A stretch of 63,963 nucleotides of DNA, filler included, from Octopus bimaculoides (taxonomy: Eukaryota): NCBI RefSeq assembly GCF_001194135.2. It is 5 parts of 3 records of this genome, joined end to end, with 100 filler letters (N's around TTAATTAATTAA, not from the genome) between each part and the next. Parts side by side here need not be neighbours in the genome. Positions count along the whole stretch, not along the records: positions 15,332 to 24,873 come from NC_068981.1; 4 more parts are not named here. The stretch is one strand, 5' to 3'. Under the pieces are notes generated by a model. It was not told the DNA's origin. It did no database searches and saw nothing but the letters and a program-made list of their open reading frames with translations. Numbering within the stretch: the stretch's first letter is position 1; each line of letters begins with the position of its first letter. Positions 16,780 to 19,010 of the stretch are shown here, in pieces. The translations under genes and the position numbers were made by a program.

Positions 16780-18984
16780 TTAAATTGACAAACTGGTATG
16801 TGGTGCTGTGCCATGGTCAAATACAATAATCGTTTCGATAATTTTATGTGTCAGGGATATAGTTAAACCAAATTTAACATTAATTATTGCTAATAATTTA
16901 GGTATCATAGACGTCATTAATATCAAAGAAATTTTTGTGAACGTTGAAAAGTCGAAATCATTTCGACTTAATATGTTGTTGCAAGCAAAGAAAAGAGATA
17001 CGATTAGAAACAGTTTCATAATGGATTTACCAATCTCGTATCTCAATGGAAAATGATGGTTAACAATTGTCTTGAACAAATTGGCATTTATGAATTCTTC
17101 TCCATATTTTGTCTGAACTAAATTCGGACGAAAAACTTTAGTGAGCTTTACAGAATTAACCATTACTGATTGATACTGCTTTATATTAGCGTTCACAATT
17201 GCAATGCAATACACGAAAAACATGGCAACAAACCATATGTCACCGACATTGTCAGGTTTAGCAAGAACTGCAACAGCTATCGTAAATGTGTAGTTGCATA
17301 AGATTTGAAAACTTGTAAGAAATATATAGATTGAATAAAGAGCCCATAATATATAAAATGGAAACGATAGAATAGTAATAAGTATAGCGACAATATTGAA
17401 AATAAAATTGACATTCAGATATAGTGGAAGAATATAAACTTTAAAATAACTTAATGGTAAAGTTAAAATCAAATAAAATGTTGGGATTCCATAATAAATT
17501 AGACACAGAATTAATTCACAGACAGAAAATGCAGCAAATAAAATTGTGATCGCAATAAAAAACCAAAGCAATATCAACTGGCAAAAAATATTTCTCTTGT
17601 TGTAATATAACCAAATTTTCTTGATATGTTTAATCCACGTATAAATTATTAAATGCCAGAAATTTGGGTTTAAAGCAGTAGAAATATTAGCTTTCATTAT
17701 TGCATAGAGTAAATCATAATCCCGTTGTGTAGAAACATTTAAATTGCCATACTTCTCTAATAATCTCTTATTTTGAATGAGAAATGTGCAAGTGGATCTT
17801 TGATGTAATGTATTATAAGCGATAGTCTCACTTAAACGACTGGGAAGAACAAAGAGGATAAAGTTGAAAGATACGTAACTGATTAACCACACTAACGGAC
17901 CCCCAAACCAGCCATCTGTATTCTCATAACTTTTTGAGAAACCTAATATTAAGGTGAGATAACCCAATGGTATATCATCTTGGAAAAGTATATTTGTTGT
18001 TTCATATAAAAAGAAGTAATGCATCAAAAGATCCAGGAAAATTACTGAAAGAGAAAAAAGAATAAAAAAGAATCTTCTTAGTCTTGAGGCAAAGAAAGTG
18101 GAATTGTGGAAACAAAATGACCATGAAAGAAAATCAGGGAAATTGTAAGTATTATGGTTTTTGTTGATCCATTCTAATTTGAATGGCGATGTATTTTGAC
18201 GGGAAAATGAAGGTGATGTAGCCAATGAAAGAAAACTAATAATTAAGGGAAAATATGCCCATAAAACAGCTCCGACGATGTTTTCATAATTGAGAAACAT
18301 ACTATTTTCTATGATATTTCCAGAACAAATCGATTTTGGGTGATAAACATGGCTTCCACTTTTATAGAGTTTACAGCAATAGTTCTTCACTAACTCTCGA
18401 TTTATACTCAATCTTCTGTAAGCTTTTAATGCCTCAGGGCTGTTCTTCTTCATGTCCTGGGATAAATTTATTAGAAAACACATGTAACCAGATTCTCCTA
18501 TTTTCAATGTATCGATAAATACAATTCTCTTCAATTCGCCGAAAATCAAATGTATTAAATCATGTCTTTGAATATTTTGTCTTCCACAATTTATATCGAT
18601 ATCAATCCTTGGAGTAGCAATGTAAGCTCCTAATAAATCCAAAGAGTAAATTGAAAAATCATAGTAGAAATTTTTATACGCTATTAATCCATCTGGTTCA
18701 TCTGGAATCCAGGTAAATTGTCTCGCGTTCGCAAAATAATCCAATGGTACGGGATTCAATAGGACATCAAGCCTTTTATCGGATAAATGGACTTCAAAAT
18801 TGAAAACCTTTATGTCTGATCTTACTAAACGAGATAAAATCTTATTGACATCGGGAGAAATCTTAATTTCACAATTATTTCCAAGTTCCTTCGCTTCTGT
18901 GTTTAATGATATTAGAATGACAATAAAAGTAATCACAAGGAAAAGTGTACCGGTTGCTGTTATTGTCATCAGCATGGCAGCCAT
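16780..18984 (-). CDS. Uncharacterised 734-aa multi-pass membrane protein (signal peptide, Cys-containing ectodomain of about 200 aa, about 9-10 TM segments), single coding exon
   Basis: 2.2-kb uninterrupted ORF in DNA where other ORFs are short; aaatATGG Kozak context; pyrimidine-rich acceptor 10 nt upstream; hydrophobic N-terminus ending NTEA; no RT, transposase, gag or integrase motifs. Confidence 0.85.
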   Translation of the reverse strand: MAAMLMTITATGTLFLVITFIVILISLNTEAKELGNNCEIKISPDVNKILSRLVRSDIKVFNFEVHLSDKRLDVLLNPVPLDYFANARQFTWIPDEPDGLIAYKNFYYDFSIYSLDLLGAYIATPRIDIDINCGRQNIQRHDLIHLIFGELKRIVFIDTLKIGESGYMCFLINLSQDMKKNSPEALKAYRRLSINRELVKNYCCKLYKSGSHVYHPKSICSGNIIENSMFLNYENIVGAVLWAYFPLIISFLSLATSPSFSRQNTSPFKLEWINKNHNTYNFPDFLSWSFCFHNSTFFASRLRRFFFILFSLSVIFLDLLMHYFFLYETTNILFQDDIPLGYLTLILGFSKSYENTDGWFGGPLVWLISYVSFNFILFVLPSRLSETIAYNTLHQRSTCTFLIQNKRLLEKYGNLNVSTQRDYDLLYAIMKANISTALNPNFWHLIIYTWIKHIKKIWLYYNKRNIFCQLILLWFFIAITILFAAFSVCELILCLIYYGIPTFYLILTLPLSYFKVYILPLYLNVNFIFNIVAILITILSFPFYILWALYSIYIFLTSFQILCNYTFTIAVAVLAKPDNVGDIWFVAMFFVYCIAIVNANIKQYQSVMVNSVKLTKVFRPNLVQTKYGEEFINANLFKTIVNHHFPLRYEIGKSIMKLFLIVSLFFACNNILSRNDFDFSTFTKISLILMTSMIPKLLAIINVKFGLTISLTHKIIETIIVFDHGTAPHTSLSI

Positions 18985-18994
18985 ATTTCGTCTT

Positions 18995-19010
18995 CTGTAA
19001 GAGAAAAACT
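18995..19010 (-). promoter_or_regulatory. Splice acceptor of a 5'UTR intron of the 734-aa gene
   Basis: Minus strand reads agtttttctcttacAG|aagacgaaatATG. Confidence 0.6.

Follow-up and report, generated by a model that had tools for sequence, protein, structure and literature searches.

A gene of an undescribed spiralian family of membrane proteins very probably lies in the stretch of Octopus bimaculoides DNA that we analyzed (63,963 nucleotides, made of genome parts joined end to end; hereafter, the window). It consists of an intact open reading frame (ORF) on the minus strand at positions 16780-18984, which runs from ATG to TAA and encodes 734 amino acids in one coding exon. Sequences of this family are already public as "uncharacterized proteins", with no assigned function, and no relative in a characterised family and no solved fold emerged from profile searches or from a confident structural model. 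The best overall explanation, to which we give a probability of roughly 0.55, is that the ORF is a functional gene for a membrane glycoprotein of this family, for which we propose an action of the transporter or channel type, or the handing on of a cargo.

The gene, its octopod copies and its spiralian relatives

The ORF sits in the part of the window that spans positions 15332-24873. An identical protein is called in O. bimaculoides assembly GCA_001194135.2, on chromosome CM046601.1 at about 193.62 Mb. The DNA there has a G+C content of 30%, and a 2.2-kb ORF far exceeds chance expectation. We consider the ORF to be a gene because its homologues reach E = 0 in the homology search and because its ratio of nonsynonymous to synonymous substitution rates (dN/dS) is significantly below 1. 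Completeness of the coding sequence (CDS), from start to TAA stop, is supported by the ORF list, by the identical O. bimaculoides protein and by an Octopus sinensis orthologue with 86% identity. The intact 734-residue frame described in an initial annotation of this DNA was therefore borne out; that annotation placed its end at 18996 because the AG of a splice acceptor ends there.

The start codon has the Kozak context noticed initially, with A at -3 and G at +4, and tttttctcttacAG occurs 10 nt upstream of it. Positions 18985-19008 (minus strand) hold a 10-nt segment of the 5' untranslated region (UTR) together with a polypyrimidine tract and CAG, the AG of this splice-acceptor-like motif falling at 18995-18996. 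The motif, polypyrimidine-TTACAG/ANAACGAAAT-ATG, was kept in all seven octopod loci examined (paralogues and orthologues), one of them on another chromosome. In O. sinensis, conservation starts exactly at the polypyrimidine tract, right after a non-conserved (TATC)n microsatellite. The conserved acceptor motif thus supports a predicted 5' UTR intron, also proposed in the initial annotation, which would end 10 nt upstream of the ATG.

The gene evolves under purifying selection. Nei-Gojobori estimates of dN/dS were 0.40 against the O. sinensis orthologue P0002, at a synonymous divergence (dS) of 0.17, and 0.46 against paralogue P0003, both significantly below 1 (Fisher p ~1e-8). Overall, values ranged from 0.40 to 0.52. 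Among close copies, constraint was strongest in the predicted ectodomain (0.25-0.35, vs 0.36-0.68 elsewhere). At sites otherwise invariant among octopod copies, the window copy carries 10 private substitutions, and its paralogues carry 4-23.

A first homology search returned 19 proteins with 53-86% identity, all from octopods (O. bimaculoides, O. sinensis, O. vulgaris and Argonauta hians); a second search with a deep profile (A2, described below), bounded by a word index, returned the same 19. We counted about six gene models in O. bimaculoides and about nine in O. sinensis, several of them partial. Three O. sinensis copies lie within about 300 kb on CM016859.1 (at 205.04, 205.13 and 205.34 Mb) and another at 208.6 Mb, while in O. 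bimaculoides 90 kb separate two copies and a further one sits on CM046605.1. Every octopod copy examined carries its whole coding sequence in a single exon. The orthologous locus of O. sinensis remains similar for several kb on either side of the gene, whereas blastn traced similarity with the paralogue locus no further than about 250 bp before the CDS and 120 bp after it. Since the acceptor is conserved in all copies, the octopod paralogues arose by DNA duplication rather than by retroposition, giving a loose cluster together with dispersed copies.

Four further models from O. sinensis and O. vulgaris (P0016-P0019), located on other chromosomes or scaffolds, cover only the first 36% or so of the protein, that is, the signal segment and the ectodomain, with 64-66% identity. 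One of them is fused to gelsolin-type domains. These models may be partial duplicates of the ectodomain or chimeric gene predictions.

Searching 1.84 billion representative proteins with the octopod profile (hmmsearch) yielded 129 clusters at E<=1e-3, of which 106 also passed E<=1e-10. Members are mostly 750-860 residues long and aligned nearly end to end. All 13 clusters with a species name are spiralian, and each is annotated as "uncharacterized" or "hypothetical". They include cephalopods, bivalves (Mytilus with several species, and Ostrea, Mercenaria, Potamilus and Sinanodonta), the gastropod Haliotis, the brachiopod Lingula, the annelid Owenia and the nemertean Tubulanus, amounting to at least four spiralian phyla. 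Many clusters come from ENA/Logan assemblies and lack a species name, and the true taxonomic range may be wider. This distribution contradicts the description of the protein as an orphan in the initial annotation, which had itself mentioned similar proteins in bivalves and corals: bivalves are among the named clusters, while no coral or other cnidarian appears among the 13. The family predates the cephalopods, and it has undergone lineage-specific duplication in octopods and in Mytilus. No paper that we found mentions any of its LOC identifiers.

Spiralian homologues such as LOC106877666 (O. bimaculoides), LOC115209402 (O. sinensis), LOC125647777 (Ostrea edulis), LOC112042193 (Lingula), CAH1791478 (Owenia) and LOC141899743 (Tubulanus) resemble the window protein over their full length, with 17-86% identity, and share its six cysteines, its motifs and its length class. 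The Ostrea edulis homologue likewise has a single coding exon. Three O. edulis contigs from independent runs (L005-L007) are collinear with the genome (L004) and all extend to common end points, about 686 nt beyond the 5' end of the CDS and 675 nt beyond its 3' end, which would fit an unspliced 3.7-kb transcript. A cephalopod-like Logan contig (L012) carries no poly(A) tail.

Predicted architecture and conserved residues

We based the structural analysis on alignment A2, which comprises 60 sequences with a mean identity of 22%. An AlphaFold2 model built with an octopod-only alignment (A1) reached a predicted local distance difference test score (pLDDT) of 36.6 and was discarded, the deeper A2 being needed. 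With A2, the model reached a pLDDT of 85.8 and a predicted template modelling score (pTM) of 0.83, and 390 residues had a pLDDT of at least 90. The sequence details given in the initial annotation (the NTEA end of the signal segment, six cysteines, an N-L-S sequon at 173, an FPLRYE motif and a series of hydrophobic segments) were all verified on the sequence. After the N-terminal run, we placed the hydrophobic segments at about residues 234-258, 302-327, 360-382, 463-511, 516-574, 578-603, 650-673 and 682-705. All coordinates in this section refer to the minus strand.

The N-terminal hydrophobic segment (residues 1-31, positions 18892-18984) is counted as the first transmembrane (TM) segment, TM1, and is predicted to be a signal peptide or an uncleaved anchor. 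Its hydrophobic run covers residues 1-27, with NTEA following at 28-31; its peak hydropathy on the Kyte-Doolittle scale is 2.41, and the model has a helix at 4-27. Nearly all 60 homologues have such a run at the extreme N-terminus, with a median of 2 residues before it. At 24-27 residues, this run could be a cleaved signal or, equally, an uncleaved anchor.

Residues 32-227 (18304-18891) form a predicted extracellular or lumenal alpha/beta domain, in which strands and helices are mixed at a pLDDT of about 80-95 and which is supported by conservation in A2; the alpha/beta fold itself spans 38-225. Its cysteines C38, C133, C169, C203, C204 and C220 are each conserved in at least 95% of the sequences, and we presume that they form three disulfides. 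The domain also contains a WxW motif, present as F90/W92 in the window protein, and the sequon at N173. We take the product to be a polytopic glycoprotein located in the plasma membrane or the secretory pathway.

The ectodomain is followed by TM2-TM4 (residues 228-379, 17848-18303), with model helices at 228-253, 297-335 (TM3 being placed at 297-325) and 363-379; these limits draw on the model, conservation and charge distribution. Conserved here are P246, the pair R301 and R304 where TM3 begins on the cytosolic side, and P339 and G361-G362-P363, both of which lie in an outside loop. A K/R-rich helical domain, predicted on the same grounds to be cytosolic, occupies residues 380-465 (17590-17847); it has a family net charge of +5.6 per sequence and is conserved at N439, F442-W443 and position 453. 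The core helical bundle TM5-TM8 (residues 466-600, 17185-17589) is conserved and modelled at a pLDDT of 90-96, with helices of 34, 23, 49 and 42 residues at 466-499, 501-523, 527-575 and 577-618. It carries the motif C-E490-x2-L-C-x2-Y-Y-G-x-P501 together with P577 and Y592; conservation in A2 is 97% for E490 (codon 17515-17517), 98% for P501 and 93% for Y592. In the model, E490 lies in the outer half of the bilayer, about 10 residues deeper than the tight turn between TM5 and TM6.

Residues 601-646 (17047-17184), from the model and conservation, comprise a cytosolic extension of TM8, a beta-hairpin at 623-633 and a short helix, and FPLRYE follows at residues 645-650 (17035-17052), with P646 invariant. 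The remainder (residues 647-734, 16783-17046) includes TM9 (647-674 in the model), TM10 (681-704), in which P695 is invariant, and a cytosolic C-terminal helix and tail, again placed by model, conservation and charge. P381 and Y604 are further conserved positions of the family in A2.

The predicted topology has both termini inside, or the N-terminus outside if the signal is cleaved, and it obeys the positive-inside rule: the density of K and R was higher in inside than in outside loops in 57 of the 60 sequences (14.1 vs 8.2 per 100 residues). Deep conservation is even over the ectodomain, TM and cytosolic parts (20-26%), and therefore the protein evolved as one unit. All family motifs (the six cysteines, WxW, RxxR, GGP, FW, CExxLCxxYYGxP and P646/P695) are present in the window protein save for two positions. 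The first is F90 in place of W, which is common to all octopod copies. The second is residue 453 (codon 17626-17628), which belongs to a cytosolic amphipathic helix ahead of TM5 and is His in the window copy and Arg in 97% of the 60-sequence family and in nine of nine other aligned octopod sequences. The TM2-TM3 loop is also shorter in the window protein than in some of its paralogues. When the extra-long members P0057, P0061 and P0132 were scanned for informative fused domains, none was found.

Proposed mechanism and competing explanations

Searches for known relatives were negative throughout, in line with the absence of recognisable receptor, channel or transposon signatures reported initially. 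The window protein had no Pfam match at E<=10, and 124 family proteins gave scattered single matches below threshold only. Sequences of chains in the Protein Data Bank (PDB) yielded nothing, or noise at E ~1, with phmmer and with hmmsearch using A1 and A2. A Foldseek search of the A2 model against 350,542 PDB chains gave no match at E<=1e-3; the best entries (E 2.4-10, TM-score <=0.11) were TM domains of ABC exporters, TRPV and NavAb, the last two at E ~8 and TM-score <=0.1, and we read all of them as long-helix noise. No fold match was found in the viral structure library BFVD. Cys-loop receptors, G-protein-coupled receptors (GPCRs), ionotropic glutamate receptors (iGluRs), transient receptor potential (TRP) channels and gustatory receptors likewise showed no Pfam or fold match, and no link to anything CHARACTERISED emerged from the Pfam, PDB sequence or fold searches. 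The confident match to a characterised family that would have undone the initial annotation's proposal was thus found neither by profile searches nor by AlphaFold and Foldseek. Its undescribed invertebrate family stands; the ligand-binding receptors, channels or transporters that it envisaged are a reading of the architecture.

The conserved residues suggest how such a protein might work. Conserved outer elements (the ectodomain, the GGP loop before TM4, the CE(490)xxLCxxYYGxP turn between TM5 and TM6, and P577) would make up one extracellular site. R301, R304, N439, FW442-443, R453, Y604 and P646 would line a conserved inner face, and between the two faces a single buried acidic residue, E490, would lie in the helical bundle below the extracellular site. 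The protein may then work as a conduit of the transporter or channel type, or as a receptor from which a small cationic or amphipathic molecule passes into the membrane or across it. Features that would suit a conduit are the buried E490, conserved Pro and Gly that break helices at their ends (P246, P381, P501, P577, P695 and GGP361-363) and conserved Arg where helices begin on the cytosolic side (R301, R304 and R453). Taken by itself, a transport or conduit mechanism is a tentative proposal, which we regard as the likeliest mode of action but would put at clearly worse than even odds.

Several points weigh against the transporter-, channel- or cargo-handing explanation. Conserved in the TM helices are just a single charged residue and a single Tyr, and ion-coupled transporters typically have more; hhalign comparisons between sub-profiles gave no signal of an internal repeat or pseudo-symmetry. 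The fold search covered the PDB and a viral library, and a remote superfamily link may have been missed. Some source, probably a PANTHER model, led UniProt to name two paralogues after STRA6. The function proposed for all members is deduced from sequence and a predicted model, and with H453 the window paralogue itself might be functionally shifted.

Two broad alternatives seem unlikely, each to a similar degree. In one, the protein would be a cell-surface receptor for chemosensation or immunity, expanded within particular lineages, whose ectodomain binds environmental ligands while the TM bundle signals or gates. Single-coding-exon genes, loose clusters, lineage-specific duplication in octopods and Mytilus, a moderately high overall dN/dS (0.4-0.5) and a predicted extracellular Cys-rich domain would all suit this role. 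The nicotinic, Cys-loop-derived chemotactile receptors of cephalopods, like other invertebrate chemoreceptors, show comparable traits: they have duplicated within lineages, cluster in the genome, have few coding introns or none and possess an extracellular domain. Unlike these, however, the octopus family has no Cys-loop, GPCR, iGluR, TRP or gustatory/odorant receptor (GR/OR) signature, differs in TM count and fold, is older than the cephalopods and has a conserved ectodomain. Copy number is also modest in both Octopus species. The strongest constraint falls on the ectodomain, whose Cys/Trp scaffold is conserved across phyla; among recent duplicates, this counts against a diversifying ligand sensor, and uniform deep conservation (0.20-0.26) points to a single evolving unit rather than a plug-in sensor. 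The sensory role raised in the initial annotation found no positive evidence, and a diversifying domain that binds ligands would show the reverse of this ectodomain constraint. In the other alternative, the protein is a membrane enzyme or a biosynthetic or trafficking factor of the endoplasmic reticulum or Golgi (glycosyl- or acyl-transferase-like, or a cargo chaperone), with the ectodomain in the lumen. Many polytopic enzymes have a lumenal disulfide-bonded domain, 9-12 TM helices and a few invariant Arg, Glu and Tyr near membrane interfaces. The conserved interface residues R301, R304, R453, E490, Y592 and Y604 agree with this, and uniform constraint over the domains would suit a housekeeping role. 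Yet no Pfam transferase (MBOAT, Acyl_transf_3, GT-C or others) was matched, Foldseek returned no solved GT-C, MBOAT or PIG-type fold, and the typical catalytic residues His and Asp are not conserved; restriction to Spiralia with repeated duplication would, moreover, be unusual for a core biosynthetic enzyme.

Three more specific identities are less probable still. O. bimaculoides paralogues P0006 (L011) and P0008 carry the UniRef label "Receptor for retinol uptake STRA6", which probably stems from an automatic rule. A divergent STRA6-like receptor would dock a secreted carrier, such as a lipocalin, and move retinol or other lipophilic cargo via a membrane cleft. STRA6, as in the zebrafish structure 5SY1, has its N-terminus outside, nine TM helices plus an intramembrane helix and its C-terminus inside. 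The octopus family has a similar size, multi-pass helices, the same N-out/9-TM/C-in count if its signal is cleaved, and few conserved polar membrane residues, which suits lipophilic cargo. However, STRA6 has no counterpart of the family's 195-residue, three-disulfide ectodomain, and the large cytosolic loop follows the third post-signal TM helix in the family but TM5 in STRA6. Named members of the family are spiralian, whereas STRA6 and STRA6L have been described from chordates, with STRA6-like proteins in amphioxus (PMC3184775). None of the 124 family proteins matched PF14752 (RBP_receptor, gathering score 25 bits), even at E<=1, and 5SY1 was absent from the A1 and A2 hmmsearch results at E<=10 and from the Foldseek list. 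A human STRA6 sequence, validated as genuine, served as a control and scored 869 bits against PF14752 and E 2.6e-169 against 5SY1; both libraries would therefore have shown similarity between the family and STRA6. With hhalign, the probability between A2 and a 20-species STRA6 alignment (A3) was 0.77%, A3 being mammal-only, with an effective number of sequences (Neff) of 1.6 and no invertebrate STRA6-like bridge sequences. Our literature search combining STRA6 with octopus or molluscs found nothing relevant, and we regard a STRA6-like identity as very unlikely. The closest gross architecture is instead that of SLC44/CTL choline-transporter-like carriers: CTL1 (7WWB) crosses the membrane with 10 TM helices, keeps both termini inside and has its TM1 and TM2 joined by a large, glycosylated, Cys-rich loop, and the layout predicted for the family agrees (10 TM, N-in/C-in, large Cys-rich TM1-TM2 loop). 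A very divergent SLC44/CTL solute carrier is nonetheless hardly credible. No family member matched PF04515 (Choline_transpo), the PDB entries of CTL1 (7wwb, 9qu3) and yeast PNS1 (9f63) were found neither by the A2 profile nor by Foldseek, and hhalign of A2 against CTL1 gave a probability of 0.15%. We rejected this identity, the likeness being one of layout only; the octopus family differs in its CExxLCxxYYGxP, GGP and FW motifs, in the large basic domain that separates TM4 from TM5 on the cytosolic side and in the great length of its core helices. Least probable of all is an origin as transposon cargo or as a retrocopy in decay, even though the coding region is intronless and multi-copy and retroelement fragments lie on both sides of it. 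The initial annotation had set beforehand, as the mark of transposon cargo, many near-identical copies flanked by terminal inverted repeats (TIRs) or long terminal repeats (LTRs). We found no TIR, LTR, inverted or long direct repeats bracketing the gene, and the copies are 68-86% identical. Every copy retains the 3' splice site of the intron and hence is no retrocopy, and synteny across two Octopus species, dN/dS below 1 and conservation across phyla also speak against this origin, which by the mark set initially is already refuted.

Flanking sequence and significance of the family

Directly downstream of the stop codon, about 150 nt of 3' flank (16630-16779, minus strand) are conserved with the paralogue and the orthologue in alignment A5 and are a probable 3' UTR. 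An AATAAA at 16761-16766 (minus strand) is a candidate poly(A) signal only, since the hexamer is AATACA in O. sinensis. About 430 nt downstream of the stop, a 103-residue ORF (16040-16351, minus strand) contains the motif GTEMGTKVAPTYATLVMG, which resembles a reverse-transcriptase fragment; its Pfam gag match was non-significant (E 0.098). Called genes at 20514-22205 of L002, some 8-10 kb downstream of the gene and outside this part of the window, include a fragment with a Pif1_2B domain, possibly debris of a Helitron- or Pif1-like helicase.

On the upstream side, a reverse-transcriptase (RVT_1) fragment at 23311-23577 (minus strand; E 1.4e-8, above the gathering score) and a weaker adjacent piece at 23605-24003 (minus strand) are frame-broken debris of a non-LTR retroelement. 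ORFs at 19479-19991 and 20100-20393 (both minus strand) appear by eye to be two halves of the apurinic/apyrimidinic (AP) endonuclease domain of a long interspersed nuclear element (LINE), are interrupted by a gap of N and had no Pfam match at E<=0.1. They are on the strand of the gene, within the presumed 5' UTR intron or the upstream region. Runs of N at 20253-20385 and 22368-22981 are assembly gaps or masked sequence, and ORFs that span them are artefacts. Low-complexity TG/CA and TACA-type microsatellite sequence at 20608-21041 gives rise to spurious Cys-, Tyr- and Met-rich ORFs on the minus strand.

Beyond the identity of a single octopus gene, these results would correct a misleading STRA6 annotation that could spread to work on vision and retinoid signalling in cephalopods. 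The family is also an appealing subject for structure determination: its members are about 735-860 residues long, the model is confident, a single coding exon eases cloning, and E490, R301/R304 and the disulfides offer ready targets. Should the family turn out to be a distant offshoot of a superfamily already known, our findings would amount to a routine improvement of annotation. A bolder reading, possible though rather doubtful, is a new class of transport or receptor proteins restricted to Spiralia and with an unsolved fold, in which a disulfide-locked ectodomain caps a bundle of long helices with a buried Glu, and in which the octopod duplicates may have tissue-specific roles, including in sensory epithelium. 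Were both fold and function to prove truly novel, the family would add a class of membrane proteins that is invisible in vertebrate, fly and nematode models because it occurs only in Spiralia, a large group of animals that has been little studied.

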